A stretch of DNA of 64,000 nucleotides from Ascidiella aspersa. Lineage: Eukaryota. The DNA lies in NCBI GenBank assembly GCA_963924565.1, contig OZ004607.1, positions 7,688,001 to 7,752,000 on the forward strand, given 5' to 3'. The position numbers and the translations under genes were made by a program. This document shows, piece after piece, positions 5,194 to 63,890 of the stretch (positions are counted from its first letter, which is position 1; every line of letters begins with the position of its first letter). The notes beneath the pieces were generated by a model. That model was not told the DNA's origin. It worked only from the letters and a program-made list of their open reading frames with translations, and searched no databases.

Positions 5194-5779
5194 CTCGTAT
5201 GCTTCGCTTTGTGCTGATTTCTTTCTCAGTTTTGTAAATAGTGTACACACTATCGTTTATTGTTTTTCCGTCATACGCTGTGGCTTGTAAAAGGTAAAAC
5301 TGTGCGGATTTTTCGGGTACGCTAACATTCAATGTAGTATGAAATGTTTGTTGTAGAGAGGTAAAAATAAAGCGACTCACTGCTTGATGTGGATTTTAAC
5401 AATGTCGTGGATATTGTTTAAAAGTGTAGGATTAGATAATTTTATTATACCGAACAAGCATTCGCTAAAAGTCGGATAAGGCTTGGTTTTATTCATATGG
5501 TAAAATGCTCGTCCATAACGCTACAATCGCTGCATATATTTATTTGCTTACCGCGAAATGTATGTTAGGTAAGTATTGAATCACGAATTCCCAAGGTTTG
5601 TGCTGCTCAAAAACAGTTTTTGTTTCTATTTTTAGTGTGTTTTTTTTAAACAAAATGTAATATTGTGTATTATTTTCGCATTTTGCCTCGTTTTTGAGGG
5701 CGTCGTACAGAATCTAAAAATGACCAGAAAGAGCGCTTAACAAGTGCGACTTAACGAAACTTCCAAAGATTTGAATTTA

Positions 5780-32302: not shown

Positions 32303-32569
32303 TTTGTTTTCTCTCCTGAATCTCTGGTTTTGTTTTTCTCTCCTGAATCTCTGGTTTTGTTTTTCTCTCCTGAATCTCTGGTTTTGTTTTTCTCTCCTGA
32401 ATCTCTGGTTTTGTTTTTCTCTCCTGAATCTCTGGTTTTGTTTTTCTCTCCTGAATCTCTGGTTTTGTTTTTCTCTCCTGAATCTCTGGTTTTGTTTTTC
32501 TCTCCTGAATCTCTGGTTTTGTTTTTCTCTCCTGAATCTCTGGTTTTATATTTCTCTCTTGAATCTCTG
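32303..32569. repeat. 27-bp minisatellite, about 10 near-perfect copies
   Basis: Unit TTTGTTTTTCTCTCCTGAATCTCTGGT; explains the repetitive ORFs on both strands. Confidence 0.97.
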
Positions 32570-33683
32570 AATAAATTTGGCTTTGTTTGTCTGTAAGTCT
32601 CCCATATATGTTTCAAGCAAGAGAGATACGGAACACTGTCGCGCACTTTGCTCCGTCTTACTCCGGCGAGACGCTCTTAAATACAAAGAAAGTCATTTGC
32701 TCCCAGACAGAAAAAACAGCGTTCTTTCTATAAAAGAAGTCCGGCGCAATAAGGACGCGTCGTCTCAATACTCATACGTGTTTGTTTTTGAAGAATAACC
32801 TTTATACTATGTGTTTTTCTGATTTCTTTTTGACCCGGCGTTTTACAAAACATTCTTTGTTCCTCATGTAAACCCTTATAAAAATAATGCCAACCGTGAG
32901 TTTAAAACCAAAAAAACTATATGCAAAATTCCGGTAAATTTCACGAAAAAAAGTACTTTTACAAACATATTTTTTACTTTTAAACGTAATTGTTTCTTTC
33001 GGTGTGTTTACTTACGCAAAATATAGACAGAATTATCAAAATATCGCGTTTATTGCGTCGGTTTTAATAGTAAGCAATTTTTACTTTCAAACTGGTTACG
33101 GATTTGTTTTATGTTGAACGTCGTTTGGTGCCGGGATACCACGTTTACTTGGATATCAAGCAAGTCGAACAATAACTGCTGCCACACTTCTTGTAATATT
33201 AACACAATTTGACTAAGCACTGGGAAACTTAAACTTATATCGTACAACAAACCTGCCTGAGTATAATTTGCAACCGATTTGAGCCAAGCCTAATAATTTC
33301 TGACAGTGTGTTCATAGCCACGCAAAAAATTAGGCGGCGTTTAGAAATATCGGCTGCCAAATTTACACCAGGCTAGCAAATTTACAGGACACGTTACAAC
33401 GTAATACACAAAAGCAAATAAAGTTTCACAGCATAATAATTGTTTTACTTTGTTTAACCACGCAAAATTCAAATAGATTTATAATATTATCGCGCTTCTA
33501 ACAGTTGTAATTGATTTGCATTGTCGGTATAACACGGGTAGGCCTTTACCAGTTAAAAACAAACTGGTTAATATTCCATTTTAGTTATTTCGTCTAGTTA
33601 ATTATATGTAAAACTTATGTTTTAAAACAGTTCGAACAAAAAGGTTAGAACAGTCTCGCAAAAGTTTTTTAAACTCTCTAAAG

Positions 33684-39939: not shown

Positions 39940-40215
39940 AAACTCTTAATCTTCGGCCTACAAGCGCCGAAAGGCTAAGCGCGTGGGCCTATCGCTTCGG
40001 ATCTCCGCCCAAGAACTCTATACGTTTACGACTGTCGAGAAAGCGAGAGAAGGTTCTCTCTTCGAAGGCCTTAAAAGCCCGGAGGCTCGAGCCCTTGCTT
40101 TATGAACGTCGACGTTAAATCGGGGACGCAACCATTCGGAATACTCGCCGGCCGAAGCACCGGCCGACTGACCGCTGACTGCTGACCACTTTACTGGCCA
40201 GAGCCGCCTTTCAAG
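39940..40215 (+). promoter_or_regulatory. Putative CpG-rich promoter/5' UTR of the PRD gene
   Basis: GC/CpG-rich island directly upstream of the first coding ATG. Confidence 0.45.
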
Positions 40216-40315
40216 ATGGACGGCGGACTTATTTTCCTGTTCGCCTTCTTAGGAATCGAAATCGCGCTGGTCGGAGGACTGGTGACCTACCTGCTCTACC
40301 GTCGCCAACCTCCTA
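40216..40315 (+). CDS. PRD gene exon 1: N-terminal signal-anchor/TM helix
   Basis: [33 protein letters not shown]|gtaagt; in-frame TGA upstream at 40183; GC-rich codons; phase 1 matches the next exon. Confidence 0.75.
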
Positions 40316-43300
40316 GTAAGTTATGCTTTTAGTATGTTTAAAATACTACCATAGGCGTATTACAGCTATACACTCACAACAAAATTTTACGAAGGCAAAC
40401 AATATATTTTCAATTGCCAAAAGTGTCAATGTTGTTTGAGCCACATTTTTTGTTTTTATTGTATATTGTAAGTAAAATTAAAAACAACTCGGTCGTTGTC
40501 GACCAAAGGTGGTATTTTTTCATGTTTAATTTGTTTTAGTTTTTTAAATGCCGTTCGTTGTAGCCTAAGCTTAGTTAGAATAATGAATTTAGGGGTAAAT
40601 TAATTTAGGGTTAGGAAAATTTAGAATCCTGCTGCCAATTCGGCTGACTGAAAATCCAATTATTATAGGTTATATCGATAGTGCGTGTTGATTAGCATTG
40701 CGTTGTTTCACTTTAAACTACAATATTCTGATTTAAAAATCAGGACGAATCAATACAAAGGTCCACGGCATTTTTTTAAAACATTCAATCTCTATAGAAT
40801 CGTTTTTGTTTTTGGTTGGAAGTGTATAATTGCCATTATTTTATCAAAATTTTATTTTCTAAACTAAATATAACAGGTTATAGTTAAATAGGCGAAAATC
40901 TTTGGTGGTTTGTTGTTTTAATACAAAATGTAATTGCATAGAGGAGAATACCCCATTTATCGCAAAAATAAACACCGTACTTTGCCCGAGTAGGCTTTTG
41001 AGTGATATAGCATTCATAACGTTCGTGATGTTGAAATAGTGCCCGACAAAAACAACAGATTTATCAGCATGCGCATTGAGTTTGCTATTTAAAGGGCGTG
41101 CTATATGTAAAAAATATTGAAGATAAAATCGTTGTAACGCCATTTCTAAGTTTTAAGATTAATGGGTGATCGTGTTTTTGTCAGTGCAAGATTTTGTTTC
41201 AAAAAAGCACAATGGGACGTTTATTAACGATGAGATATGTTTTATTTTTATTTTCTTTGACCTCAACGTCTGCCTAAATTACTTGGTTTTAACGGATTGC
41301 TTATTTAATATTAAAAATAAATAAATAGGTAATCACAAACAATATTGATACCCAATGTTGCCCAACCATCAAACCAGAGTCCAATATGTCGATTACAGAT
41401 ACCGGTAGCTGCAAAAACGCCTCATACCCCATGATTACAGTCGCTCGCGTTGCAAGCCTGCGCTATTACAGAGGTCATCTAGGCGTATTTACAGGCGCAC
41501 ATAACTTGCGCGTGATATCATATCAACTGCAAGTCTCCCGCCCAGGGCTATCCAACTATAAATGTCAGCTGATTTACATTTCGCGCAAATTGGCGATACC
41601 CGAGATTGCCGTCCAACGAACGTATCGCCTATACACCTCCGGACGCGGAGTTGGATTGTGCCATAGGAAAACAGTCGTCATGTATGTGTTTCTGTGTGAG
41701 TGTGTGTGTGTAGACGCGTCTACGTGTGTGCGTATGCTTGTGCGTAACCTAAAATCTGATTTCCAGCACTTTTATTAATACAAGATTAAACCTCATTATT
41801 TGCGGGCCTGAGCCGTCAGGTTACAATAGTGAAAATGTTGGGTGTATGTTTTCAAATTACTCCAATTCCATTTCAATTAATTGGTCTTTTTAGTTTTACG
41901 TGGCCTTGAACATTTTCGTTGGTCAATGTGCCAATTACTTACAAACACAAGTTATACCAATATTACTTGTTTCACGAAAACACAAAGCATGGCAAATCAT
42001 TTCTAAAAAAACTAATATTTTAAACCGTGTTTGGATTGCTTTGACCAAAACACGAACCCGACCAATTTAATAGATTTACGGCGCACAAAATAATCGTCTC
42101 AATCTATTGTGAATCATCATTCCCAGATACATGGGGCTACTTTCCTAGGTCACAAGACGAAGTAGTCACCAAGTAACGGAATACGTCCTAGATAGAAAAG
42201 ACTCTCGAAAACACCCACGCAATATCTTGTGCAAATCTGATGCATTAAAACTGAGAAAGGCAAGATATCGCCATGTAGTTTTAACTTTTCTACTGATACG
42301 ATTACTAGATAACTCACACCCCGAAAACAACTTATTTAAATGTTAATATTTTTAATTTCGTCGAACAATAACACAGGAAATAGACGACAATAAGTACAAG
42401 TTGGAGTAAATACTATTTAGAAAGTCTAAGAAAGATTTACTTATTTTTTGGTGTGAGTTTAATATTATTTAATAAATCTTAAGAGGCAAACTAGTTTGTT
42501 TTTCATTTTTTGCGCAAAAGTATTTTTCTGATGGAATATACCGAGATAGCATTGAACATAAAATCACAACAGAGGCGCGCCAAACGCTTACCAAGCCAAA
42601 AAAGTCCACCAAATCTTAAAGATCCGAGCTGATAAGTCGAGCACACCAAAACAAAGGAGCGCGATTTATCCTCTCCTTCCTAAAAAGCTCGGCATCGACC
42701 ACCTTCTATATCCTTGAAGAGCGAGGCTCAGGTCACACGTGCCGCGTTTGTTATTGCGTTTTCTTTTCCGTTCGCAGAGCCAAAGCCCAAGCCCAAGTCA
42801 TCGCTGAAGCCCGACGGCAAAGTGGCGACGACCTATGGCGACCCGAACGACTCAAACGGACACGTCCTCATCAACGTTGACGTAAGTGCAGATCAACTGC
42901 CGCTGTGAGCGCACGGGTTTGTGCGATGTCAACGAAACCCCTCAAACAGAGAAATATGTGTTTTTTTCCTTAAACAGAGAATATGGATTTTTTTAACGTT
43001 TTTGACTTTTTTTCTAAAATACTACTAGGCGTTTTACATCTATTTACATGTAGGTTTAATAATGTTTTACGAAGACCAACAATATATTTTAATTGTTTGA
43101 GTATCAATGTTATTTTTGCCGCACTTTTTCTTAATTGTTTATCAAGTAAAATGTAAAACACGCCAAACACCAAATTTAGTGTTTCGTTTGCATTGTTCAA
43201 GTTTTCGCCGTTCTGTGTAGACCAAGCTTTTTCCTAATTTTAGAAAACGTAAAATTTTTATTTTTTTATTTTTAACTACATGTTTTTCTTTTTTTAATTA

Positions 43301-46300
43301 ACATATATTATAACTACAAAGATAAGTCTGAGTAAATTAAACCTTATGCCGTTGTTGGGTAAACCTCAATATCCCAAAGAAAAGTTTTACAAGTGCTGTT
43401 CACCAGTTTTCAATCCTTTTTAAAGTCAATGCATTCCTGGTGTTTTTAAAATCCTTATAAGGACAAAAATTACCTGCTTTGCGTTCGACTTTTCTTTATA
43501 TACATTTTGATGCCAGCAAAGCTTTCCTTAATTAAATTTTCTTTGGGGCCAGCGGAAATGTCTTACTGACCCATCGCTGCTCCGGCAATATTACATATAA
43601 GTTATTTTTCAACTTATATTTCGTGTGTTGCTTTTTGGCGCGAATGGCACCGCCTTTGGTCCAACGCATTATTTTAACGCGAACGTGAATTACCGAAATG
43701 AGGCCCCACCCTACCTCCAATTCCCACGCTCTTACCCGTGTATTGTTGTCTACGCAGGACAAGCGACCCAACAATGTTTCTCCGTCCAACGATTCCTCCG
43801 CATCCTCGTCGCCAGGTGAGTAACCATGGTAACTGTAATAGTTACCTAGCTGTTGGAATCCTTGCATTATTCTTCATCGATTCGACAGCTGAACGTTACT
43901 TGTTGTGAAGCGCTTTTTTTTTGCGCACAAAGCGTTGCTTGTCACCTTATTTCAGCAACGGCGGATAAATGTATTTACGTAGATTTCAGGTTTGGGAAAA
44001 GTGCTTCCATTTACGCATTGCTTTACCCTTTTAAGATAATTTCGTTGGTAAAGCTTGCCGGCGGAATTGCAATCTTGTACTTAAAATAAACTTAATAAAT
44101 CTAATTTAAAATTTTTCGGTATTCACTTACCCTTAGATTTTTTACAGAAGCCCTAATTGCCACAATACGTGCTGTTATACCGGGTGTTATACCCAAGCTG
44201 GGATCCGTGAACCCCTTAAGGATACTTCAAGTTTAGGGGTTCCATAAAATCCTAATTGAAACTTGGTGAACAGTTAAAAATGTAGAAAAGTTACGCTTTG
44301 GTCTTTTAGATTTGATATCATTTTCATATTTGCATATGAGTTTACCGGATACAGATAGTTTAATTTTCCTAAAACGTAATCTCTTTAACTTTCATGACGA
44401 CATTAGTCTACGCGAACCAAAAACAATTTTAAGTGGTTCGCGATAAAAAAAAATTCAAAATCACTGTGTTATACTAAAACATTGTTGTGCTTTTTCATAT
44501 TTTTATAAAATTATGTTGTAATTTAAACAGCAAATTCTCCTCATTTACCTCATCGTATAGACTTTCGAGGAATTAATTGCCAAATGCTTGACGCCAGACT
44601 ACAGACCAAAGCGTTTTTGTAACTCACCAATACACAATATTCATATATACGCGGGGGCAAAGATCATACACGCCTTTGAAGCGAGCAGCCGAGTAGCATA
44701 GGTGGGCCGCGTAATGGTGCCAAGAGCCTCTCTAATGACGTGGTCTGATTGCTACCCCCTCTGTCCGCTAATGAACACTTCCCTGCACTTGTTGACGTAC
44801 CGGCTAATAGACTCGCGCGCGCCTAACTCGCCATTAAGCAATTTGATTTCGATGGGTCATTGTCGCTCGAAGCTGTTTTACGCACTGGCTCGCGGAATTT
44901 CGGAACAAGGTTATTACGCGATTTTTGTTTGGCGAAGTCGGCATCTCTTGACCTTTCATGCGCGCCTGTGGTGTGATCCGACCAGCGAGTTTTTCGCCTA
45001 TCTAAAACCTCGGTTTATGCCAGTTCCATTAACAGCAATAGTGCTCAAATTTTAATGACTGCGAAAGTGGATCGCTGTAAGTAAAATAAAAAAACTTATG
45101 TTGTTTTAAGTGAAAAAAAGCTTCTTAGGTTCGAGCGAGGGCTAAAATCACAACATTGTAGATCGCAAATTGCGATTTCATCCGTAGCATGCCAAATGCA
45201 AATGCATCTATCTCTAAATTCGTTCAATTGGAGAACAGCTTTAAGGAAAATTCCTTTTGTTTATGTTTACATCAGTAACGCCTAATTTTAAACACATGAA
45301 CAACATGTTTGTTATTCAACTATACTGGGATCTCGATGTGGAAAATAAATTTAAATAAACTTATTTCTTCAATTGTAAAATTGTTCTTTTTCCAGAAGAA
45401 CAATTTTACAATTAAAACAATGCCTCGTAGCAATATTCAAAATTATTTATTTTTTTGTTTAAATTACACACGCACTTAAATCAAACCAATCTAAAAACGA
45501 AATATTGTAGTAATCTGAAAAACAGTAGACGCATGACAACAAACGAAAATCCCACGCACGAATCGCAGCCTGGGATTACGGCGTTTCGGGCAAGATTAAA
45601 ACTGTTGCCTAAGACTCATCTCGTCTCCGTAAATCCTCTTTCGCTGACTATCGCAGAGCATATTTCCTCCACGCTTGTCAACGCAAAACTTGTGCTTTGC
45701 ATTTACGCAAAAATGATACTGAAGTTAAGCCCAACAAGGGGCAGATCCAGGGGGAGGGGCACGTAGCCATTAACAAAATAAACGAAAATAAAAGTATTTT
45801 GTGGTGTCCCCACAACAAACTGTGTGGTGTCATTGAGGTTAGTTATTTAATCCATCACATTTGTACGTCACATTTGTATGTCACGTTATGGCGTAACTTG
45901 GTGCCGTCATTTCTAAAAGAAAATGTATGCCCTCAAACAAATTCCTGAATCTGCACCTGGAAACGCATAGTACGTTTTCAATTGAAAACCGTCCCGGGCT
46001 TATTAATGAAAGTGAGCTTTATTTCGTTTTTGGCAGAGATTATTTGTTATTGTATGCGTGCATGCGATAAAAAAGTGACATAAAAGGAATTTACAAGCTT
46101 TTATGCGATGATAATAAGTTAATTGAATTTGGGTACACTATGTACGGATCTGCAATGTAGCTTAATGATGAATTGCAAAGCCACAAAGGTCACGTAGATC
46201 GACATCATCTTGATTAAAACGTTAAGATACGAACGTCAGTTAATGTCGATTAACCTAATTTTTATTAAACATTAAAAATGTTCACCGTGAACAAATCCAG

Positions 46301-49300
46301 ACTATAGGTTTTAGGAAGGCGAATGTTTACGCCGTGAACAGGCAAGTCTTGCGGCCTTTGCTTAGACCGAGCGATTTGCTTTTGCACAAGCCTCGGGGCC
46401 TCTGCGCGGTTTCGCGCGCTAAGGCTGAAGCCACGCATACACTGCTTCGAATATCAAGCATATCGCTATACAAGAGATTAACTCACGACCTGACATGCCT
46501 TTTTGTCAGAATTTCTACAGCTCTCCTTTTGCTGATTTCCACCAATTGTATCGAATGACCAATTAATCTTTCCCTGTGTTGACAACGCAATACCACGCTT
46601 TCACGGAAATCACCTGTTAAAGGAAAAATAAAACTTGAAAAAAGTCATTTCCTAAACCTAAATTATGCATTCGTAATGCTAGGTGAAGCAAGTCGTTGAA
46701 AATATCCTTGAGTTTTTATCGTTAGGATTTCTAAATTAGTAGTTAAAGCATCTTTAACTATTGCTAAATGTAACGTGTTGAATAGTAGCCAATAAACTGC
46801 ACCTTAGCGAGTAGTTTAACAGACACACCTATTAATAGCCTGTCAACGCACATTAAAAAACAAACTCCATTTTTTACCTAGCTGTTATCCAAGCTGCCAA
46901 TATAATTACCAGTCATTTTTATCGACGCCTTATTAAAGCGCTTGGGAATTGCATTTACTGATTAAAAAAAAACTAATTTCCGGGCGTTGGAAGTCACAAA
47001 GGTCTTTATAACATAAATAAACACCATAGCATTTCACTTGTTTTTATAGTTTTACTCGGTTTTACTTGGCGATGAAATAACAATACCCAAAAGCAGAAAA
47101 AAATTGCCGAAAAAAATCCAGACGGAGACGTCACAAAGTTACGTCATAACTGAACACGGTTATCGTTCGACGTAGTGCGCAAATATGAAACTAAAATCTT
47201 AGTTTAAATACATACAACGGGATGACCGGTAAAAAAGAGACAAAAAGAACATTTTACCGGAAAGGGGTACCTGCAAAACTTATTTTACCGTAACGCCTTT
47301 CCGGACCGTTCCGGCTTACTTCTAGCACGGATTTGCCTAATGTAAGCTTTCCAACATAACACCATCGTCACTAATTATTTGTTTACTTTCAAATACAGGC
47401 GTTCGCTTACATAGCTGTGACCTATTGTTCCATCATTTTAGATCCGAAAAAGAAGCTTCTGGATAGCGACAGCGACGTAAAGATCGAGATCGAACCATCC
47501 GCTCCCCCGCATCCCATTGTAGAGGAGGAGGAAGAGGTGCCTCCCTATTCACCACCTCATACTATTGTTCCTGTAAGTCCAATCGGATATTTACCAGTGT
47601 TGTAACCAGTCATTCTGTGGCACAAGTCCCAGTCAAGTCATTTGGAAAGTAACTTGAGTCCAAATCAAGTATTTTGCAAAAGTACCAAGTCAAGTCCCAG
47701 TTCAAGTCATGGATTGCTCAAGTCTAGTCCCAGTCAGTTCAATATAAGAGCAAGCTAATTTCAAGTCATGTCATTGACATAAAAGTAAAGCGTTAAACTA
47801 TAAAAGTTGGTTAAATTGTCCGATTATGAGCAATAATTCAACGAAAAAAGAACACAAGCGCAATATACAGCGTTAAAGTTGTTCAACGTACAAAACTTGA
47901 GATAAATTTTAATGAAAAACACTGAAGTTCAAGTCAGGACATTTGTCTAAAAGACTTAAGTCAAGTCAAGTCATTTAAAAACAGTGACTCAAGTGCATTT
48001 AAGTCCAATGGATAAAAGTTATTACAACAATCATATTTCTCTAAGTTTGGAAAAGACTGATATTAAAGGGGTCCTTGTCACAGTGACGAAGAGGTTGCAT
48101 ATACATTTACAAGAAATTAAGAAACGTTTTATTTGATGTAAAAACCAACTATTTTTTAACAGGATTCATGAATGTTTTTGTTATTAGATATGGTGTAAAC
48201 GCTTTTATTATCCATATGTTTTTCATATTGCTGTGCACAGTCGGTTGCTAGCATGTAGTATTATTGCGGCTGTCGTAAGTTATATTATCGCATTTAAATG
48301 TAGCTCGGTCGCAAGCCTTTGGTTAAGTAAAGACGTTCCCCTGGGTATAACAATCTGAAAATATATAGAAATGTGGTCCTTGTTGAAACGTCAAATTGTA
48401 CCGCTTTACAGTTCTTATATATCGTTAGTATCGTTGGTTTTTCGTTAGTTTTTTTACGGGATATTATTCAAATATCTTTCATTTGCGATATTTTGTATAG
48501 AAACAATATTTTATCGTTTATACTCCTTTCGCAGATGGACAGGTCGGCATTTGAGGAGGAAATCGTCCCCACCAACATTCGCTCGCAAGAGGAGCATCCG
48601 ACTCCCAGACCGCGCCAACCACGAGAAATAGAGGAGCATCTCGCCAAGGACATCGACTCTTCCGATGCCTGCAGCAACCAATCTGTTCCTTGTAAAGCTG
48701 TAGATGAAGATGTTGTGATCCCGATCGAACGCCAGGGTGACGAGGAGCGTGTCCCGTCTCCTCTCTACCGCCGAGCGTCTTCTCCATCCCCTGAGAGCCT
48801 CACGGAGGAAAAGAGAAGACCGGAAATTGTGGCTCATCAACCTGACGAGGAAATAGTTCATGGTAAGTCGCTCAACTGTGGAAAGGAAACTTGAAAGTCA
48901 CCTATTTAGTGCCCCAACAAGTATTTGTTTCTAAAGAACATTTCTGTTTTACCTTGTTGTTCATTAAAAATCTTTGCACATTTACAATGAAAGCTATAGA
49001 TAGTATGATACATCGACATATGTTTTTGTATGTTTTCTGTTTTCATTGGTCGATTTTATCGATTGTTCTGGCATACCGTGTTGAATAACAGAAGTTAAAT
49101 AATGTTTTAAGGTTTATTTTTTTCCTGAGGTATGTTTTTCGTTTTGGTACTTGCACCGATGACAGTTGCACATTATTGAAAACAACACAAAAATTAAACA
49201 AATAAAACCTAGCAGATGAAGTTTCTCGTAAACTCAACACTTAAATTAATATTAAATGACTTTGTGGAATCATTTTATCATTATCACTAGCTATAGTGAA

Positions 49301-52300
49301 ACGCACATAGTTGCTTCAACACTCACTGAGCGTGTGCTATATTTTGTAGACAACGTATTGAACGAAACCGCCCCTCCGCAAATCGCCCCTCGGCTTACGG
49401 GAGATAAACAGCACGAGCGTAAAGACTCAACTTCTTCTTCGTCTTCTTCCTCTGCAGAGCACTCGGACGACGACCACGAGAAGCCTCTTATCCCGGTGGA
49501 GGAGCTTCCGATAAGCGACTCTCGCGCTCCAAATGAAGAGGAAATCCTCCACTCTTCTGTAGTCAAGGAAACGCACACAAAGCAAACCCGCCTTTCCTCT
49601 TCCACATCTTCGGAAGTTGCAGTTATCAAGAAGAGGTCAGATCACAGCTCTATGGAGGAGGTTGAAATCCTGGAGGACGGGCCCGTGGCTCTCACCTCCG
49701 GGGACGACAACACGGTGGTCGACAAGCACAGGAGCAGGGTTCGGAGGAGAGTCATCCGGAACAAAGAGATCATCGAGTACATCGAGGAGGAGAACATCGT
49801 GATCAAGAAGCACAAGAAAGTGTCCAACGTCACTCGCCAGGAGACGTCGAGCTCTTCGTCCTCAGAAGAGGAACAGGAGGAGTTGAAAGTAAAGAAGAAG
49901 AAAAAGAAGAAGGTAAAGAGAAAGAAGATCCAGGTGTCGGAGTCTTCTTCTTCCTCATCAGAAGCCTCTTCTTCTGAGGATGAAATTGAGGTCGAAGAGA
50001 ACCCGAAAAAGAAAAAGTCTTCGAGGCACATGGAGGTCCAAACGATGCAGGTGCCTACTTCATCTACGGATGAAGCAGTCGTAAAGGTGAAAAAGATCAA
50101 GAAATCCAAGCACAAGAGAATTCAAGCGACTGTTGCGTCAACAAGTTGCAGTTCTTCCGAGGAAGAAACCAAAGTTTTTAAGGAGAGACGCCAGAAAAGT
50201 TTGCGTCACATGGAAGTGCAGACCTCCAAGTCTCCGCCATCCAGCTCCTCGGAAGACGACTTCAAAGATAAAAAGGTCGAAAAGGATCTGCGACACATGG
50301 AGGTGCAGACCTCCAAAGGTCCGACGCCGATTTCCAGTTCCACAGAAGACGAGATCAAAGTCGAGCCGATGCCGATATTGGAAACCACCTACCGCCAAAT
50401 GGATCTGCATCCAACATCGGGCGTTCCTGCGCAGCGCTCGAGGTCCTTCAAGAAAGAGCTAACCGTCGAACAAACAGAGAGCAAGAAAATTACAATGAGG
50501 AGCATGGAAGTACAAACAAAGGCCCCATCATCCAGCTCGAGTTCTTCGGAAGACGAAAAAATAGTCGAAAAGATTGAAAGAAAAGAAACATCTTTGAGGC
50601 ACATCGAGGTACAAACCTCCAAGCTTTCGTCTTCAAGTTCCAGCTCGTCTGAAGACGAAAAGGTCGTCGAGATCAAAACAGTCAGGCATATGGAGGTACA
50701 AGCAACGGTTTCTTCATCGTCCAGTTCTTCTGATGACGAGACTAAGATCGCGATAGTGAAGCGAGATCCCGTGAGCGTACGAGATGTCGACATCCAAGTG
50801 ACCCCGGCTAAGTCCTACGAAGAAAGAGCTGACATCTCTTTCGAGAAGAAATCCGAGATTGTGATTCAGGATGTCGAGAGGTCGGAGAGACGCATCGAGA
50901 TGCAAGCCCCGGAAGACGTGGAGGTGTGGGAGTTGACGAAGACCACCTGGGACAAGCAGAACCAGACTTCGCGTCCTCCGAGCAGCTCTTCCAGTTCGTC
51001 GGAAGAGGAAAAGATCGCGAAGAAGAAGAAGGAGTCCTCCGATAAGCAGATCCAGGCAACCAAGTCGCCGTTCACATCCAGCTCTGACGAGGAGGACCGA
51101 AGAGTAGAGCTGCTCTCCATCGAGAAGACCGACCGTCGCATCATGTCGAGCAGTTCCTCCTACAGCGAGGTCTTCCCAAGAACGAGATCCGTAACCGACA
51201 AGGAGACTCAAGCATCCAGGTCCTCCTCCAGCGCCTCGGAGGAGACAAGGAGGAGGTACGTCACTCTCGCTTCCCACACACATCATCAGAAGCAGGAAGA
51301 AGACAAGACCTTCTCCACCGAGTACTACTATGACGTCACCAGCAAGCAGCAGAAGACCCACGTCACCAAGACCCTCATCGAGCGGACCATGTCGCCCACG
51401 CGTGACGTCACACATCACCACGTGGTCAGGGAGATTCGGGAAAGTCCCACCACTTCGGGTTCGATATTTTATATATTGCTTTTAGTGTTGAAAAAAAATA
51501 TTCTTTCTATGTATAAAAAGTGTTTAGAGTACAATGTGAACAAAAACCTGTGGAACGTTCTATGATAACAATTTATTAACTAAGTTTAAGATCAAAACCT
51601 TTATACCTTCTGAACGCTGTCGAACACAGCTATCTAACTCTTGTTCTTCCTCAGTCATAATTGTTAAAGATGCCAAACACGAAATTTAATTTTAACAAGG
51701 TATTTTCGAAATTTGATTTATATATACGGTATCTTAGTTGAAAATCGCTGAACGTGTTCTAACAAGGCTATATCTAACACTTATTTTCACCAGTAACAAC
51801 AATGGAAATTCCCACCCCCAACAACGATATGTCCATGATGGAGGTAACTCTGCAGCCGAATTACAAAGACGAAGAGATTGAACCAATACATGAAAGTACG
51901 CATTTAGCTTGTTACAATAGTTATATAAAATATACTGATTTCCTGATTTGTGAAAGATCGTTGAATGGAAACTTTAAAGTTCTGCTATTACATCGCTTAC
52001 AGGCTTTATCGTGCTACCGATGCATTTATGATTAAACTGCTTGCATTAACTTCTTTGGTTTAACAACAACCGTTCCATCATTGTTTGGTTAATAAATTAA
52101 CAAGATTTAAGTTTCCTAAACGTCTTTGATCTATAATTTCTTGGCAAATTTGACATGCGTGGCAAATTCTAAAAGCTTTGTCTTTGTTGCAACAACCCCT
52201 CTTATGTTTTTGATGCACTGTCGACTAATAGAACCGCTTCTTAAAACAGTTTACTCTGAAAACTAAAAGCAAACAACAAAATATATCAGCAGTAAAGGTC

Positions 52301-55300: not shown

Positions 55301-58300
55301 TGACGATTCGTCAACGGAACGCGCAATTTCGACCGCTACCTCGACCTTGACCAGGGATCACGTGGAAGAGATAATCGTCGAAGAACCGATCTTGTAAGTT
55401 AACACTTGAAAAAAAATTTAAAGACTGAAACTTTACTGGCTTAAATAATTGATCTCAGGAAAGAGTCGATTTTCAGTAATATTTGCGAGTATGAGTTGAA
55501 TGTCCAAAACTAGACATTTTCGCCACTTGAAATCGCAAAACTCATTTCAATTCCGAGTAAAATCTATTTCTTTTAGTACTTTATCGTAAAAGACGAAGTT
55601 TAGTTTGGTTTCAGTTCAGTTAAAAGTATAACTGCTTGAAGGCCTAAATCACTGCCAGGGTTACAGCTTTTATATGAACATTTAGCTAAGATTTATTTAA
55701 AAGTATAGATTATTGTCTTATTACTTATTCTGTTCAACACCGACATTCAGCCTTATTTAAACGTGTAATACTTAAAGCCGGCCTTTTTTGTTTTACTATT
55801 CAGAAAATCGCGCAAGGATATCAAGTTCACTTCCGGCTGGCAGCGCCAGGTGACCTTGGACGACCTTCTCGAAGCGGGAGTCGTTACCGAGTCCACGGTT
55901 GAAAAACTCGAACATGGTAAGAAGTGCTATTTAAAAATCATATGATATGGTTTAACTCCTTTCTTTTACTATAGCTCTTACACTTTGTCAATTGACAACG
56001 TTCGGTATGTTCACTTTTGTTTAACATTATGCAGTTCATTAAATCGATTTGACAAATCGATTGATTGATTAAAACTAACTTTTTATTTTATTTCTTTAAA
56101 AAATAAACAAGATGGGTGCGCAGCAATAGATAACTGTAAAAAGTACATAAACCGCCAAAAAGAAAAATTGACAAATTTCGCCGTTCTCTCGAATTAGTTT
56201 TGAATTACTCACCTTTTGTTGATGTCAGGTTACCTGTGTATATATAATTCGAATAGGCACAATTCCTAAGAACGAAGAAAATATTTTCGTCCATAGCGAA
56301 TATATAGGCTACGGTAATTTGGTAAGCCAATACCCGTCTATCTGTTTTCGTGAATAAGCCACGGCGAAATCCCTGCGATCGCCGGCGGCTATTTTTGCAA
56401 TCTTCACGTTATGCTGTATGACTAAACATCTTCTGAGGATCGCAACTTAAAAACATCAGCAGTTTTTTCTTGTTTTTTTCGTGTTCTGCGTAACGCCTGC
56501 TGATTCGTCTCGTCGACACAAACAAAACCTTTTTATTACTTACGTACATTAGTGGGCTACTATATTTAAGGTCAAGGGTCATAGGTGCAATAACAATATA
56601 GGACGTCACGATTTAGGCATGACATCAAAGCAATCACAAAATAAGCTATATGAGTTTTGGAAATATAGTTTCCAACAGTTTTTGCATTGATAGCTGTTTC
56701 CGCTTTCCGCGTAATACAAACGTTGATTCACTAGGTATAGCAAACGACTACATTCTAAATCAATAGATCAAAAATTCTTTATACTTCACCTGTCCTAATC
56801 AAAGCCATTTTTTAATAAGTTCTTAAGAGAAATATATTACGCCACAAAAAAGGCACTATCTTTTATTTCTAATGAATGAAAAACTTGAACACGGTCATTC
56901 ATTTGAATTAAGAGATTGATGATGCCTTATTTTGTGGCAAAATATATTTAAGAACTTAAATAAATGACTAAGTTTAAGACAGGAAAGTATAAAGAGCATT
57001 TACTTCAACTTGTACCCATTGTCGTCACTTACCTGCAGGGCGAGGAGATTTCTTTTTTTTTTACAAATACAGTTTGTGACATACATCAATTATACTTTTA
57101 CGTAGGAACGATTGAGGAAGCAGACGTTGAGAAAACGCTACAGAGGTATCTGGTTGGAAACGACCCGATCGCCGGGTTGCTGATTGAGGAAACTGGAGAG
57201 AGGATGTCAATATTCGAAGCTTTCAAACAGGGATTAATCAGAAGAGGTGATTTAACGTTGTCATGTCCTGACAATTCTTATTGATAGTTATTTGGTTTAC
57301 TCTGTACAAGGGAACTCTGTCTATCAGCACCTTTACCAACCTTAGCGTAATATACTTTCATTTAACTTATATCTAGTGTTTTACATAAAATAATTCATTT
57401 GTATTGTGTTAATAGAGAATATGAAGTGCAAGTAAAGGTAAACCTAAAACTAAACTGTTTTCAAAATCATCTAACGGGCTGCAGTAGCTAACCTATAAAT
57501 TCAGAGACAATTAAACATCTAATCGTGGACAATTTTCATAGAATATAGCTAATCGGTACCCCTAATCAAAGTTATTTCATTCTACGAACTGTACGACTGT
57601 AGTGTCAACTAATATTCTTTGTGCTCACAACAAAGGCACTTCTATCAGTCTTCTTGAGGCCCAAGCGGCAACGGGACGCATCATTGACCCGACAACCGCA
57701 AACAAGATGTCCGTAAAAGAGGCAAAGCAGGAGAAAATAATCGACCGGCAGTTCGAAGCAGTTCTGACAAGGTACAGTGCATATAAGCAATCGTTGGACA
57801 ACTTTTTGCACATCAAAATTCGTCTTAATAAAATATAGTTAATATCGTCTTAATAAAATATCCTCAATTGTTATATAAGGAGATTAATTTAGATAATGTT
57901 TAATGACCTAATCCTAAATTGGAAAGTTGCCAAACATAATAAATACACAAAAAACAGAAAACTAAATAAAACATATGTATTACAATATAGATTTACACAA
58001 AAATAACAAACGAGCAATGTTGTTATCTTATGAACAATTGTGGCCACCACAGTGGCACTATTTAGAATTGATTACAAAATTTAAATAATAGCCGTTACAC
58101 GATTGCACCATAATAAATGTATGAAATACATTTTTAAACCAACCCATCACATTCAATGTGACAAACCAGAATTGCTCGCCTGACGTACCGTACCAAAGAT
58201 AAACAAACGAATAAAAGTTTCAGCGAAGTTGTCTCGCTTGACCTTGGCCCGTGATTTTCAAGGTCAAGCAGGATAGGTCGAGCTTACTTGACCTCCGATG

Positions 58301-61300
58301 TCCAACCGGCCATTTCCGTTACCGAATTTCACTTTCGAAGTGTCACCTGGTGCTAGTGAGTAACATCGCCCAATGTGACCTGTTAATCGCTCGCGAGGTT
58401 CCGTTTATTTACATGAGCCAAGTTTAACGCATCGTCCGGTCTTGAATGAAAGAAATTCGCAAACTTAAAATCAATCTAGCTCATCTCGCGAAATCTTACA
58501 AATGTTTACGTTTTCTCCTGCGAAGATTCAATTTTTATTATTATAAATTTCTGTAAAAGCATAAATAAAGACATCATTCTTTAAAAAATTCTTAATTAAA
58601 AGAAAACTGAACAAAACAATTGATGATTTTGGCATGTTTTTGTCAGCTTTTGTATAAATAACCTAGAGCAGGGCCGGTGTAGCATTTTTGTTTGGGGGTC
58701 AGAACTTTTTTTAGGGATGACGTCGCAATATTACGTCATGACGTGCTGTCATTAAATAATTAATCTTAAAAAACTTGTTGTTCTCTATTGAACTCGTACG
58801 CACAATAACGTATTAAAAATTGATTGGAGTTCGCGAGAAGTACGAACCTTTTTGTATTCACCTGACTGATGACCCTGGGTCCGCCCCTGACCCCAAGGGT
58901 CGTTATGACTACATTTGTTGGCAGCGCTATTTTTGCTCTGATTTTAATCGACGTTGCCAGATTTAACTTTACTGGGTAAGCTAATCTAATAGCTAAAAAA
59001 GTTGAATAATTCAAGGAAGATTTTTTTATAGCTTTTTTAACCCTTGCGCCAGCTCCAATTTAAACACCTTATCAGAATACTCTAGCAAAGCTAGTAACAA
59101 TTATTACCATTGCTAGAGTATTCTGCTATTACTGATCAGGAATTAACAAAATGTTCTATCACTTACAAAATACAAAGCATCTAACATCTCAAGTAAAAGC
59201 CTCAAACCTAGCAACCATCACCAAGGAATTAGGTTGGCTCCCATTTTTAGCTGTAATGCACTTTTACTGACCTTCACTTTGTGTGACTATATAACTGCCA
59301 TTACCAGGGCCGAAAAAGCTGTGTTCGGTTACAAGTCGCGAGGCAGCGACCACAACTTGTCATTGTTCGAGGCCATGAACCAGGGAATCGTCGTTCAAAA
59401 CCACGGGATCCGTTTGCTTGAAGCTCAAATTGCAACCGGAGGTAAAACCATTTTCAAAAACGTGTGTTTGCCATTGCTATCGATAAAAATTGTATGGTAT
59501 TATGAATGTTTATCATTTTAGGATACTTGTTACAACAATCTTAGTTGTTTAAATAATATAAAAGGGCGTATTTTTATGAAACCCCAGACTATTGGTAGCA
59601 GGTTTCTACTTGTCGGTCACGCTTGCCAAAGTTTTCTTCTGACAGCCTGTTTGGTTTTTAAACTTTTTACCCAATCCATACTGCTTTTGTATGTTTTTGA
59701 CTTTTTTGTTTGGAGCGATTTAAAACAACAATATATATAAAAAAAAATACAACAGTTATGCCCCAGCAGTGGAATGATCAGTTTGATATAAAGAAAGCTT
59801 TTTTGATCAGAATTAGCGACGGGCAATTGGCTTACTCTTGTTTCTATAAAACTTAACTGATGATGGGAAATATTGTTATTGAGTCGCAGCCTCACGTTCG
59901 AACTGCTGGTTAACAGTAACGCTCAGAGCAGTGTTTCTTAACCTTTTAGCGCTCTTTGAGCTGACATGAAATTTTCTCGTACCCCTGTCTACAATAGCCG
60001 AGGGTAGTAAATAAAATTGCAATAATAGGAATTAAACTCAGTGTATTTATACCGTAAGTGTTAAATGTATGCATTAAAAACAGTCTTGTAAGTTCAACAA
60101 TATTTACAAAACACGAACAATCAGTCATTTTACTAATGGCTTTTTTGTTGTTGCTTTTAGTATAAACGCATACTTTACAAATCTACCTAAACAGCGCATA
60201 CTTTCAAGCTGAATGCCATACCCCCTGCTTTCGTGCTTCGTACCACCGAGCGATACACGTACCCCTGGTTAAGAACCCCTGGCTCAGACTAAACATGGTA
60301 CAACCCACCAAATTTCGCACACGTGTAACCTGTACGGTCGTTTGCCAAAGTGTATGTAAGTGTGTGTCTCTTTAAAGCATAACTTACCTGGGCTCAGCCT
60401 TATCGTGCTTCTAGATCTAGATTGTACGGGCCAAACATTTTAAATAGGTAGCATTACATCACGCTGTTTTGAATGCAAAGTGGTTTACCGATATTTTTTT
60501 CTTTCCCAAAGGCGTCATCGACCCACAAGCAAACCATCGTCTCCCGGTCGAGGTCGCTTACGATCGAGGACTCTTCGACGAAAACCTTCACGAAATCCTG
60601 GAAGACCCATCGGATGACACCAGAGGCTTCTTCGACCCCAACACTGAAGAAAACCTCACTTACATGGAGCTTATGCAGAGGTAGATTGACTCATATAACG
60701 TTGTGTGCATTGTAGGCCCACCTAGACTTTTTTAAGATGCTGAATCTGTTCGTAAGTGTCATTTGGCCGCTTGAAACAATGGCCTGTAAAATTAAAAAAA
60801 TGGGTATTTTTCAGGTAGTTAGATGTAGTACATCTTGATAAACAACCAATTAAACATTTACCATACTTAATTTTACCTACTAAAGTATTCTAGCCTTGCC
60901 CTTGTAATGTAGATCAATGATATTAAATAGTGGCAGGATTAAAATATGCGTCTTTCTAAATAGTTTAAATGCTCAATAATGGTAAACCACTATTCATATT
61001 GTTATGTCTTTTCCGTGTACATCGAGTATTTCTGAGGCACTTGGTGTTGTTTTTTCTTACGTACAAACAACAAATGCTTTCTCCTTCCAGGTGTGTTACA
61101 GACAAGGACACTGGTCTTCTCCTGCTTCCGTTGAAGAAGAAGAAACAGGAGGAAGCTGACGTGGTCCAAGTTCCAGTGGAGGAATCAGTGGCATCCGATA
61201 CAGCGGTCGTCGTACAAACAGGTAAGGAAGACACAAGCTTATCGCTGTATTTTATTAGGTAACGTCCTGGATACACAACCTAAACAGGTTATAGTTTGGT

Positions 61301-63890
61301 TGTTTAGATTGTTGCGTGTATTTGATTACACTAATTGCCTCGCAAGTGACGTCACGAACTGTGAGGGAGTGGGGCTTTCTAATGAACTATTTAAAGCCAT
61401 ATGAGCAATATTTTAGTAAAAACGTGCATCTTGTATAAAAGGTAATAAAGTTATTAAATAATTGCAAAGTATTATAAAAGTACAACTGCTTTACTAAAGC
61501 CAAGTTCCCATTACAAAGAAGAGGTTCCATAGAAAAGAAAAACAATAATATCCGTTTGCGTGAAATCAACTAGAAAAATATGTTTATTTTAGAAATTTTC
61601 ATATTCCCGTTGAACGGTATCGTCATTATTTTATTGATGATTTCTTGTATTCTTGCTGAGTTCAGTCCAAGACGCCGTAGCATATTACCATTAAAATATT
61701 ATACTTGGTTTGATTTATTTATCCAAATACAATGACGTGCTTTCTTATTTTACAGAAAAGACATTAAACCGCAATGAAGGCTCTTTGGCTTCGATCGGTG
61801 AAGATACACAGGTCGTCACTTTAGAGGTAACATTTTCGATGTTTCCACTTGTTATTTCTACTAAATATTTTTATTTGAAAATTAAAATATATTGATTTTT
61901 CCTTTACTTGAATGAACCTTATGTAGACGTCGGAGCGATCACGAAGTGGACGACTGACCTCAACGACAACAATCGTTACCACGGAAGAGCTCGTCACCAC
62001 CGAGCAAAGCCAAAAGCGAAAGTAAGTTGTGTCTTCTTAAAACAAGTTAGAAATCTGATCATTGGGTTTTTATGTTTTGAACTCGCATCGTCAAGCCATA
62101 TGGTTAAAATTTTTGTGGCGTTTGTCTGCCGAGGATTATCAATTAGACCACGTCAGATTTTCTATAGAGTATAGGCCATTTTTATGTAACAGACCTATTT
62201 TTCGATACTAATAACAAGTGCAAAGTTTGCTTGGCGCTCCTTCCAAAGTGTGAGACCGCCAAATCAAATCTGTTGGCATCTTGTGGTTTCCTTAGGCCAA
62301 CTTATCCTACCCTGCTATAGTTCCGTTTTTCTTAGCTCATGGAAGAACTTAAATGGGTACAAATATTCAGATTGATAAACGATATTTCCTTCCTTATTTT
62401 TAAGGAAATCACGTCACGACATTCATTTCTTGTCCGGCTGGAAGCGACGTGTGACCTTGGATGACCTTTTCAAGGCCGGTGTCCTTGCAGAGGAGACCAT
62501 TGAGCAGCTGGAAGAAGGTAAAGCCTCAACGTAGATATATTTAAAGTGTTCGTCCGGTTAGTTGTTTATATGGTGTTTGTATATACGTTTTACATTTGCA
62601 ACCTATTGGAAATCATTCAGGGCAATTCATTTTGTTAGGCAAGCCATTTTTCCACGTTAGCAGCAATAAGTCCAACTGACATACTTAAATGCCTAAAGTC
62701 TGTCAATTAGACATCATGACCTTTTTACGTGACCTTTTTTTTTAAATTGCCTTCAATATTTCAAAGGTGCCTGTCCAAATAACCTTATCCGATTCGTTGA
62801 TCCAATATACTTTTTGTAAGCTAGTTACAATATTTGGCCTGAAAGACTTTATTCAATAAAGCTATCTAAGAACACTACCTCGAGTAAACTTATGCCAAGT
62901 CGGTGAAAGATTCAACACTAAACAAATTCGCTTTAAACTCTCCACTAGGCAAAATTGAGGAGTCTGTGGTGGCACAATCCCTAGAGCAGTACCTCGTCGG
63001 AGCCGAGCCCATCGCTGGCCTTCTAATGTCGAACAACGGAGACAAGATCTCGATTTACGACGCGTGGAAGAAGGGCTTGATAAGACGTGGAACCTCGATC
63101 AGCCTGCTCGAGGCCCAGGCGGCCACAGGGCGCATCATTGACCCCAAGACTGCTGAGAGAATGTCGGTGTCTGAGGCCTCACAAAAGCGTGTAATTGACA
63201 GGCAGTTTGAAGCTGTGCTCACCAGGTGGGCAGCCTTTTTGCTGTATTTGCTTTTTTGGTTTTCTTAGAATGCCAAATGCGCCATAGAGATTTGAGGAAC
63301 ACGGTTGGTCTTGGGCCGTACTGAAATGACGCACTATATTTTAAAGGAGTCTAGTTTACCTTTTTACAGGGGGTAGAAGAAAACATACGCCATTTAACAT
63401 TTTGGTCTGAGAAGATTCTTCTTCCCCATCCTAAGTATACAGCACTTGTACATTGTCTATATTTCTGAGGTTAAGTCATGTGCATAAGTTCGCGTTTGTC
63501 GCAGCTGTCATCAAAAAAATGTTTTCAAACTTCATGTGTACACTTAGTTCTTACACCCTTAGTTGAGAAACAAAACAAAGAAACGAATGGCATTCGGACT
63601 TTTAAAGTCGTTACATTCATTTCTATAGGTTAGTCTTTGACGAAGAACCTCGCTTTTTCCCTTATTGCAAGTATTAAATACTTACTGAACCCCGGAAATG
63701 CGGGCCTTAAGTATACCTTTTGCTCTGCTTACCAGTTGTTTTATAATTCCTCACAGGGCCGAACGTGCGGTGTACGGCTACACGACCCGACTCAGCAAGG
63801 AAACCATCTCGCTGTTCGCTGCCATGAAGCGAGGCTTGGTCGTTGAGAATCACGGAGTGAGGTTGCTGGAAGCACAGATCGCCACTGGAG
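40216..63890 (+). CDS. Plakin-repeat-domain (plectin/epiplakin-like) protein with N-terminal TM anchor and long Ser/acidic disordered arm; continues beyond the window
   Basis: join(40216-40315,42778-42881,43758-43815,47442-47572,48535-48862,49350-51458,51794-51895,52349-52423,53076-53201,53788-53913,54573-54655,55233-55393,55804-55916,57106-57246,57636-57771,59308-59441,60512-60680,61091-61221,61756-61826,61927-62021,62405-62517,62949-63225,63757-63890) = 5017 nt. Every junction is GT-AG and phase-compatible. PRD signatures: [62 protein letters not shown]. The PRD part is certain; linking the 5' exons to it is inferred from phase. Confidence 0.8.
42778..42881 (+). CDS. PRD gene exon 2
   Basis: ttcttttccgttcgcag|[35 protein letters not shown]|gtaagt. 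Confidence 0.8.
43758..43815 (+). CDS. PRD gene exon 3
   Basis: tacgcag|[19 protein letters not shown]|gtgagt, phase 0 to 1. Confidence 0.72.
47442..47572 (+). CDS. PRD gene exon 4 (EPSAPP and VPPY motifs)
   Basis: ttttag|[44 protein letters not shown]|gtaagt. Confidence 0.82.
47595..48005 (+). mobile_element. MITE family A, copy 3
   Basis: cagtgttgtaa start, AAGTC arrays, shared internal attatgagcaataattcaac. Confidence 0.75.
48535..48862 (+). CDS. PRD gene exon 5
   Basis: ctttcgcag|[12 protein letters not shown]...DEEIVH-G|gtaagt. Confidence 0.85.
49350..51458 (+). CDS. PRD gene exon 6 (2109 nt; repetitive Ser/Glu/Lys-rich disordered region)
   Basis: GC-rich part of the 769-aa ORF; ttgtag acceptor; weak donor GTTCGA at the GC-to-AT transition; repeated RHMEVQT...SSSSEDE units. 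Confidence 0.88.
51794..51895 (+). CDS. PRD gene exon 7 (symmetric phase-1 repeat exon)
   Basis: caccag|[34 protein letters not shown]|gtacg; 102 nt. Confidence 0.75.
52349..52423 (+). CDS. PRD gene exon 8
   Basis: atccag|[24 protein letters not shown]|gtaagt; 75 nt. Confidence 0.78.
52755..52851 (-). mobile_element. Degenerate Penelope-like fragment with mutated hammerhead core
   Basis: About 95 bp homologous to 16400-16498; core reads GTGAAGA (C3 lost)...GAAACGTT. Confidence 0.65.
53076..53201 (+). CDS. PRD gene exon 9
   Basis: ttttag|[42 protein letters not shown]|gttag; 126 nt. Confidence 0.8.
53378..53524. mobile_element. Small MITE with CCGAGT/CCGACT subterminal repeats
   Basis: cagggctgcggagt...actcttcagcctg; repeated cccgagtccgactcc; related (CCCGAGT)n at 53715-53744. 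Confidence 0.6.
53788..53913 (+). CDS. PRD gene exon 10
   Basis: ttaaag|[42 protein letters not shown]|gtaac; 126 nt, paralogous to exon 9. Confidence 0.8.
54026..54395 (+). mobile_element. MITE family A, copy 4
   Basis: cggtgttgta...tacaacactg terminal inverted repeats. Confidence 0.75.
54573..54655 (+). CDS. PRD gene exon 11
   Basis: ttgcag|[28 protein letters not shown]|gtaaa. Confidence 0.78.
55233..55393 (+). CDS. PRD gene exon 12
   Basis: [30 protein letters not shown]...EEPI|gtaagt; an alternative in-frame CAG acceptor lies 15 nt downstream. Confidence 0.78.
55804..55916 (+). CDS. PRD gene exon 13 (start of PRD 1)
   Basis: [37 protein letters not shown]; 113 nt, homologous to 62405-62517. 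Confidence 0.9.
57106..57246 (+). CDS. PRD gene exon 14 (PRD 1)
   Basis: [47 protein letters not shown]. Confidence 0.93.
57636..57771 (+). CDS. PRD gene exon 15 (PRD 1)
   Basis: [30 protein letters not shown]...FEAVLTR. Confidence 0.93.
58669..58889. mobile_element. MITE with CAGGGGCGGATCCAG-type ends (related copies near 14168-14299 and 45737-45959)
   Basis: cagggccgg...tgggtccgcccctg; shared internal ttacgtcat..tgacgt with the 14168 copy. Confidence 0.55.
59308..59441 (+). CDS. PRD gene exon 16 (PRD 1)
   Basis: AEKAVFGYK...[28 protein letters not shown]. Confidence 0.93.
59929..60281. mobile_element. hAT/Charlie-like MITE
   Basis: cagtgtttcttaacc...ggttaagaacccctg; TSD gctcagag/gctcagac. 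Confidence 0.8.
60512..60680 (+). CDS. PRD gene exon 17 (PRD 1)
   Basis: [24 protein letters not shown]...[18 protein letters not shown]. Confidence 0.93.
61091..61221 (+). CDS. PRD gene exon 18 (end of PRD 1, linker)
   Basis: [25 protein letters not shown]...|gtaagg. Confidence 0.9.
61756..61826 (+). CDS. PRD gene exon 19 (linker)
   Basis: ttacag|[24 protein letters not shown]|gtaac. Confidence 0.78.
61927..62021 (+). CDS. PRD gene exon 20 (linker)
   Basis: atgtag|[31 protein letters not shown]|gtaagt, phase 0 to 2. Confidence 0.78.
62405..62517 (+). CDS. PRD gene exon 21 (start of PRD 2)
   Basis: [37 protein letters not shown]; 113 nt. Confidence 0.9.
62949..63225 (+). CDS. PRD gene exon 22 (PRD 2)
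   Basis: 277 nt, equal to exons 14+15 (141+136) fused; contains [14 protein letters not shown]. Confidence 0.93.
63757..63890 (+). CDS. PRD gene exon 23 (PRD 2; gene continues)
   Basis: [44 protein letters not shown]|gtagat; 134 nt, same length as exon 16. Confidence 0.93.

Follow-up and report, generated by a model that had tools for sequence, protein, structure and literature searches.

Organisation of the locus

The DNA analysed here, referred to as the window, is a 64,000-nucleotide stretch of the ascidian Ascidiella aspersa (contig OZ004607.1; G000:C1:7688001-7752000, plus strand, in an assembly of 308.6 Mb and 75 contigs). It contains most of a gene that starts at position 40216 and ends near G000:C1:7759368. 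Since up to about 7.4 kb of the gene lie outside the window, 39 kb of downstream sequence was added; extended coordinates continue the window numbering beyond 64000, and the genome position is 7688000 plus the coordinate. The gene probably encodes one protein of about 2050 amino acids, with an N-terminal signal anchor, a disordered arm, three plakin repeat domains (PRDs) of the desmoplakin B type and a tail, which would tether intermediate filaments to a membrane. This single-polypeptide architecture is supported by a phase-consistent gene model, by a spliced contig (X3) that covers exons 2-5 and by a colinear homologue, P0123, that is encoded in a single open reading frame (ORF). The same evidence upholds the combination of membrane anchor, disordered arm and PRDs proposed in the initial annotation.

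The exon model was built from open frames, GT-AG sites, splice phases and homology, and was searched exon by exon. It comprises 31 exons and encodes about 2053 amino acids; all introns are GT-AG, the phases are consistent and there are no internal stops. In the encoded protein a transmembrane segment (TM), the putative anchor, is followed by about 1080 residues of disordered arm, then by three PRDs of the B type and finally by a plectin-repeat tail. At the junctions of the PRD exons the split codons rebuild the conserved G and R of the repeat consensus, and the PRD junctions are therefore validated. The model is least secure at its 3′ end. A phase-consistent chain of 23 exons limited to 40216-63890 had been described initially; the phases hold, with 22 exons in the window, and the chain continues beyond its supposed end.

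Colinearity with a single-frame homologue

P0123 is an environmental protein of 1065 amino acids, encoded as one ORF on one 3895-nucleotide contig. It falls in the 90% cluster of P0066 (592 amino acids) and has the same N-terminus. Its N-terminal TM leads into an acidic, Ser-rich arm, after which come two PRDs, the first of the B type, and a plectin-repeat tail; PF00681 is the only Pfam family found in it. In a tblastn comparison, P0123 and the locus are colinear over 31 kb, the matching parts being exon 1, PRD1/PRD2, PRD3 and the tail exon. PRD2 (60-86% identity) is matched better than PRD1, and PRD3 is matched at 55-72% identity.

The two N-termini also correspond in detail. Residues 4-32 of P0066 and P0123 align to exon 1 (E 2e-6 for P0066), residues 44-70 of P0066 align to exon 2, and P0123 begins, with Met, three residues ahead of the point that corresponds to the start codon here. 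Counted by hand, 28 residues separate the TM from a conserved YGD motif here, compared with 24 in P0123, and there is therefore no space for a further exon between exons 1 and 2. The colinearity of this single ORF with the locus makes it likely that anchor and PRDs belong to one polypeptide, and is the main evidence for that view. When residues 1-125 of P0066 were used as a query, P0066 itself was the sole match. The matches to the second PRD and tail of P0123 were dominated by vertebrate plectin and epiplakin fragments, and included no tunicate orthologue and no protein with a TM.

The proposed N-terminal anchor

Exon 1 (40216..40315, plus strand) provides the start codon and a hydrophobic helix followed by RR, and corresponds exactly to the N-terminal exon quoted in the initial annotation. 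The ATG at 40216 has a good Kozak-like context (A at -3, G at +4), an in-frame TGA (40183-40185) lies 31 nucleotides 5′ of it, and the donor after 40315 reads gtaagt. The helix comes after only four residues, of which one is acidic, and is followed by RR and then a PK repeat. The basic residues on the C-terminal side of the helix had been noted previously, together with a helix length of 25 residues, which is here revised to 23. The Kyte-Doolittle hydropathy is 2.54 for the best 19-residue window and 2.34 for the 23 residues. Exon 2 (42778..42881, plus strand) encodes the basic PK repeat and the conserved YGD..NGH motif; a piece of the X3 contig begins at its acceptor, 42778, and splicing of exon 1 to this position yields a PKPKPK run.

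The N-terminus thus has the layout of a type III (N-out, C-cytosolic) signal anchor, namely a hydrophobic stretch of 19 or more residues at the N-terminus, without a signal peptide before it and with a net positive C-terminal flank, and the N-terminus of P0123 has the same layout. Based on the positive-inside rule, we infer that the helix is an uncleaved signal anchor with its N-terminus outside and its C-terminal side in the cytosol. A helix with a hydropathy of 2.54 sets the protein apart from soluble, epiplakin-like proteins that consist of PRDs only.

Transcript evidence and the disordered arm

Reads and contigs were aligned to 42770-48769 (6 kb), where the model had a phase problem. The X3 contig (1080 nucleotides, plus strand) aligns there in three pieces, 42778-42882, 47440-47572 and 48535-48769, and joins exon 2, a micro-exon, exon 4 and exon 5; its letters 564-618 (55 letters) are unplaced. 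The first piece, with 458 nucleotides of the contig before it, starts precisely at the acceptor of exon 2, and the contig is therefore spliced at this point to upstream sequence. Exon 3 is a 58-nucleotide micro-exon (43758..43815, plus strand), identified from the 55 unplaced letters as the top-scoring open AG..GT candidate of matching length; 55 rather than 58 letters are unplaced because of the first base and the last two bases of the micro-exon. Its borders are cag/GACA...CAG/gtgagt. It restores the reading phase, turning phase 0 into the phase 1 that exon 4 requires, and exon 2 joins exon 4 in phase only through it. Two other ways of joining exon 2 had been considered, directly to 47442 from an alternative donor at 42885 or to an alternative acceptor at 47399; both were dropped once the X3 contig and the micro-exon made them unnecessary. 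In the DNA runs, X1 and X2, these 6 kb are colinear with the genome.

Exon 4 (47442..47572, plus strand), a piece of the spliced X3 contig that also fits by phase, encodes an acidic segment. It includes a PPxY-like motif (PPYS in VPPYSPP; 47540-47551) about 120 residues from the N-terminus, which was not seen in P0123 and could be a candidate binding site, near the membrane, for a WW domain such as that of a Nedd4-type ligase. Exon 5 (48535..48862, plus strand), joined directly to exon 4 in the X3 contig, continues the arm and is classed as disordered by its position relative to the Uversky line.

The largest part of the arm is exon 6 (49458..51458, plus strand), assigned by phases and composition, which runs from phase 1 to phase 1 over 667 codons and ends in a weak donor. 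It is rich in Ser (18%), Glu (13%) and Lys (11%), and between 49830 and 51245 contains MEVQT-like units, eight by the strict pattern [MIV][ED][VMI]Q[TAV] and about ten by eye. No Pfam family was found in its open frame (769 codons, 49256-51562). The sole phmmer match of exon 6, P0121, is an unrelated Ser-rich repeat protein and was taken as spurious.

Exons 7-11 (51794-51895, 53076-53201, 53788-53913, 54573-54667 and 55233-55393, plus strand) are predicted short acidic exons with consistent splice phases. Exons 7-9 are paralogous phase 1-1 units that, by eye, echo the MEVQT-like (MEV..) unit of exon 6. Each of exons 6, 7, 8 and 9 runs from phase 1 to phase 1 and is skippable without a frameshift, a pattern that suggests exon duplication and possible isoforms differing in arm length. 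From the helix to PRD1, which begins near residue 1112, the arm measures about 1080 residues; the low-complexity region of about 1130 residues proposed initially is present and slightly shorter. A charge-hydropathy comparison places every arm exon on the disordered side of the boundary and one PRD exon on the folded side.

Several features of the 6-kb interval concern the read data themselves. Contigs of X2 and X3 depart from the reference sequence at about 1-2% of positions, exon 5 included, which is consistent with high heterozygosity or with different individuals. In the bins 45370-45569, 45970-46369 and 47570-48169, word depth in the DNA runs ranges from thousands to about 100,000, with many chimeric joints; these bins are high-copy interspersed repeats in intron 3 (43816-47441) and intron 4 (47573-48534). 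The few RNA reads of a further run, X4, lie mostly on the 47.8-48.3 kb bins.

Plakin repeat domains and tail

As had been anticipated from the sequence, the exon-by-exon Pfam scan found the plectin repeat, PF00681, which fills the exons from 55.8 kb to the end of the window, with matches at 57.1, 57.6, 60.5 and 62.9-63.2 kb; two more exons are only near the threshold, since an intron splits the repeat. PRD1 is encoded by exons 12-17 (55804-55916, 57106-57246, 57636-57771, 59308-59441, 60512-60680 and 61091-61221, plus strand), as indicated by PF00681, colinearity with the PRD of P0123 and the junction codons. It is followed by a linker, exons 18-19 (61756-61826 and 61927-62021, plus strand), which is the best phase-consistent chain at this point; exon 19 looks, by eye, similar to exon 11 and to the linker that precedes the PRD in P0123. 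The first three exons of PRD2, exons 20-22 (62405-62517, 62949-63225 and 63757-63890, plus strand), match PF00681 with an E value of 1e-20 and have 1LM7 as their closest structure. The remaining parts lie outside the window: the end of PRD2 (extended 64905-65635), PRD3 (extended 66237-69530), a short basic exon and the last exon, the plectin-repeat tail (extended 71184-71368), assigned with Pfam. At least two B-type PRDs had been expected; there are three, plus the tail repeat.

For the PRD2 and PRD3 exons, as for the contiguous PRD of the neighbouring gene described below, the nearest match is desmoplakin PRD-B (1LM7, 5DZZ), which ranks above PRD-C, plectin and envoplakin; identity to PRD-B is about 50%. 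PRDs bind intermediate filaments (PMC4782060), and by homology we infer that those encoded here do so as well.

The gene belongs to the plakin family in the broad sense, as Pfam and comparisons with PDB structures both find PF00681 repeats arranged as PRDs. The features of a conventional plakin, a CH-type actin-binding domain (ABD) and a spectrin-repeat plakin domain, were not found. Genome-wide hidden Markov model (HMM) searches gave no match to the CH domain (PF00307) in the window, the nearest on the same chromosome being about 8 Mb away, and no match to the spectrin repeat (PF00435) within about 9 Mb of the window, the SH3 insert not having been searched separately. The earlier statement that CH and spectrin exons are lacking is borne out by these searches.

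A second gene and related tunicate proteins

About 2 kb downstream is a second gene for a predicted membrane-anchored PRD protein (G000:C1:7761401-7768533; L005:401-619, 5624-5848, 6196-7533). It encodes a signal-peptide-like segment and has a TM exon; its last exon, of 446 codons, encodes an acidic linker rich in Ser together with one complete PRD of the B type. This contiguous PRD aligns with desmoplakin PRD-B over its full length, including the N-terminal extension (E 6e-74). The gene is colinear with Clavelina P0050, and an exon of it matches a region of P0050 that the source names PDZ, in which exon Pfam found nothing. In P0004 (Ciona savignyi H2ZEQ9), the tail of the orthologue of the gene described here is fused to the PRD of the neighbour's orthologue. 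P0004 is probably a fused mis-annotation, and since it joins the tail of one orthologue to the PRD of the other, the tandem gene pair is probably conserved.

With the PRD exon of the neighbouring gene as query, many tunicate proteins were returned. An N-terminal TM (hydropathy 2.4-2.9) precedes a single PRD in Ciona P0075, Phallusia P0069 and Clavelina P0092, as well as in several unlabelled marine sequences; Styela P0076 has a short hydrophobic start of 1.44 only and is possibly truncated. Among 254 fetched proteins, almost all of them PRD proteins, an N-terminal TM occurred only in sequences that are tunicate-named or unlabelled, and every vertebrate PRD protein retrieved lacks one. A tree of the PRDs places the vertebrate domains in a single clade (100/99) and groups most of those from tunicate or unlabelled proteins apart from it (94/92), with one subclade that consists entirely of proteins with a TM (99/96); the tree is midpoint-rooted and has some long branches, and so shows clustering, not direction.

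Judged by its anchor, its juxtamembrane motifs and PRDs colinear with those of P0066 and P0123, the gene is a member of a group of predicted membrane-anchored PRD proteins, so far found in tunicates and unlabelled marine sequences. The tunicate entries named 'desmoplakin-like' or uncharacterised (P0075, P0069, P0076, P0050 and P0092), together with P0123 and P0066, have in common an N-terminal TM, short and weakly hydrophobic in P0076, and a B-type PRD, joined by an acidic or Ser-rich linker. The architecture, which the initial annotation had not recognised, is thus common to these entries and to the second gene downstream. The 'desmoplakin-like' entries mostly have one PRD and a linker of 100-400 residues, whereas the gene described here encodes three PRDs and a tail, and its arm extends over about 1080 residues. 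We suggest only tentatively that these proteins constitute a family of single-pass membrane proteins that evolved in tunicates and binds intermediate filaments through PRDs, with this gene as its longest member and its arm perhaps multimerised by the MEVQT-like repeats.

Comparison with known plakins

The PRDs encoded here and in the neighbouring gene align with desmoplakin PRD-B (1LM7, 5DZZ) over its full length, including the N-terminal extension. Desmoplakin differs from this protein, which has no plakin domain, rod, PRD-A, PRD-C or desmosomal partners, a coiled coil not having been searched for. Desmosomes are reported to be absent from non-vertebrate chordates (PMC2905707). The protein resembles epiplakin in consisting of PRDs and linkers and in lacking an ABD, plakin domain and rod. 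Epiplakin, however, has neither a TM nor a long N-terminal disordered arm, and the vertebrate PRDs form a separate clade in the tree; no EPPK1 homologue could be identified in lamprey or Ciona (PMC8782857).

It had been stated initially that plakins reach membranes indirectly, which is generally the case but has exceptions in plectin 1b (PMC2426950) and dystonin-a2/b2 (PMC6975176). In plectin 1b an N-terminal signal anchor inserts a filament-binding plakin into the mitochondrial outer membrane, the remainder being cytosolic; unlike the protein described here, plectin 1b retains the ABD, plakin domain and rod, and its anchor is encoded by an alternative first exon in an otherwise conventional plakin. 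Dystonin (BPAG1) a2 and b2 have an N-terminal TM before the ABD, and the b isoforms also have a PRD. In these isoforms the TM is followed by the ABD, plakin domain, spectrin rod and microtubule-binding end, whereas this gene has no CH or spectrin matches. Five cytoplasmic intermediate filament proteins have been reported from Ciona (Karabinos 2004, as cited in PMC5603733). In the literature searched on tunicate plakins and on TM-bearing PRD proteins, no description was found of proteins that combine a TM with PRDs only. Related proteins are already public as database predictions, a published description not having been found in that literature.

Proposed function and alternative interpretations

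The most likely function, as judged from the sequence, is the tethering of intermediate filaments to a membrane of the secretory pathway through a flexible arm. After an N-terminus of four residues, the single hydrophobic helix would act as the uncleaved signal anchor, and the basic residues that follow it would hold the remainder of the protein in the cytosol. There the PRDs would bind intermediate filaments, as their vertebrate homologues do, and with the long flexible arm as a spacer the filaments would be tethered directly to the membrane. The hydrophobicity of the helix points to a membrane of the endoplasmic reticulum (ER) or secretory pathway, probably the plasma membrane.

Several points weigh against one membrane-anchored polypeptide. 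P0123 carries no organism label. The X3 run consists of Logan contigs without a label, and its RNA nature is deduced from its spliced contig. The transcript data cover 42770-48769, outside the exon 1-2 and exon 6-7 junctions, and X4, the one labelled RNA run, has almost no depth on the exons in that interval. The gene is weakly expressed in the X4 sample, and X4 neither supports nor refutes the model. The phmmer search of exon 6 found no real homologue among 1.84 billion representatives. The exon 6 donor, CGG/gttcga, is weak, and the frame could continue to a stop at 51563.

It is possible, though unlikely, that the anchor of the same gene resides instead in the mitochondrial outer membrane, as in plectin 1b, or in the ER or nuclear envelope, as in dystonin-a2, and that the protein positions organelles on filaments instead of working at cell junctions. 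Strong helix hydrophobicity favours targeting by the signal recognition particle (SRP) to the ER over mitochondrial signal anchors, and the helix is strongly hydrophobic (2.54). The neighbouring paralogue and many family members have a signal-peptide-like segment before the TM, which points to the secretory pathway. An organelle anchor would nevertheless fit the N-terminal position of the helix, its basic C-terminal flank and the lack of a signal-peptide n-region, and it has precedents in plectin 1b (PMC2426950) and dystonin-2 (PMC6975176).

Less probable still is the presence of two genes, one for a low-complexity protein with a TM, ending in or after exon 6, and one for a separate, soluble, epiplakin-like protein made up of PRDs only and starting from exon 7 or near exon 12. 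Such a division would accommodate the weak exon 6 donor and its run-on frame, the in-frame ATGs of exon 7 and the position of the exon 6-7 junction outside the transcript data, and homologues of the neighbouring gene, P0012 and P0044, have no TM in their models. In P0123, however, a homologous TM N-terminus and PRDs share one ORF. Exons 6-12 form an unbroken phase-consistent chain, the sequence after the proposed exon 6 donor looks AT-rich and intron-like, and the MEV.. unit of exon 6 recurs, by eye, in exons 7-9; all these features favour a single gene.

A cleaved signal peptide, or splicing of exon 1 to upstream ABD or plakin-domain exons, either of which would leave no N-terminally anchored cytosolic linker, is very improbable: an AG at 40214-40215 directly precedes the ATG, but the hydrophobic run, at 23 residues, exceeds the length typical of a signal peptide, a basic n-region is lacking, the charge is on the C-terminal side and lumenal PRDs would meet no cytoplasmic filaments, while upstream exons are opposed by the in-frame stop, by the Met of P0123 aligning three residues earlier, by the lack of CH and spectrin matches within megabases and by the opposite orientation of the next gene upstream.

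Vertebrate intermediate filaments attach to membranes through multi-protein plaques, and the only directly inserted plakins of which we are aware are special isoforms of very large conventional plakins. If the tunicate family suggested above exists, this one protein would do what in vertebrates takes several proteins, as in desmosomes, hemidesmosomes and the nesprin-3/plectin linkage. A compact protein with a TM, a spacer and PRDs, encoded by several genes in the sister group of the vertebrates, would represent a different and simpler filament-membrane linkage and would bear on the evolution of such linkages around the origin of the desmosome. The automatic label 'desmoplakin-like' is misleading, as it masks an architecture undescribed in the literature searched.

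Other loci and flanking sequence

PRDs were also found elsewhere in the genome. At G000:C4:3681228-3742782 (plus strand), a CH domain at 3.681 Mb, a weak spectrin match at 3.692 Mb and PRDs at 3.724-3.743 Mb lie on one strand, and this locus is probably a conventional plakin. Further PRD loci are C4:30078808-30079308 (minus strand), C6:10778383-10778721 (plus strand) and C6:12542599-12544596 (plus strand). The first of these resembles the TM-PRD proteins of Ciona and Phallusia; no TM exon was found for it in the 10 kb examined.

Upstream of the PRD gene, an N-terminal connexin exon (27803-28060, minus strand) is divergent from it at a distance of about 12 kb. The 12 kb between the connexin and exon 1 contain no coding-like long ORF. 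A tandem repeat in this intergenic region (32206-32646, unit of about 27 nucleotides) produces artificial open frames on both strands.

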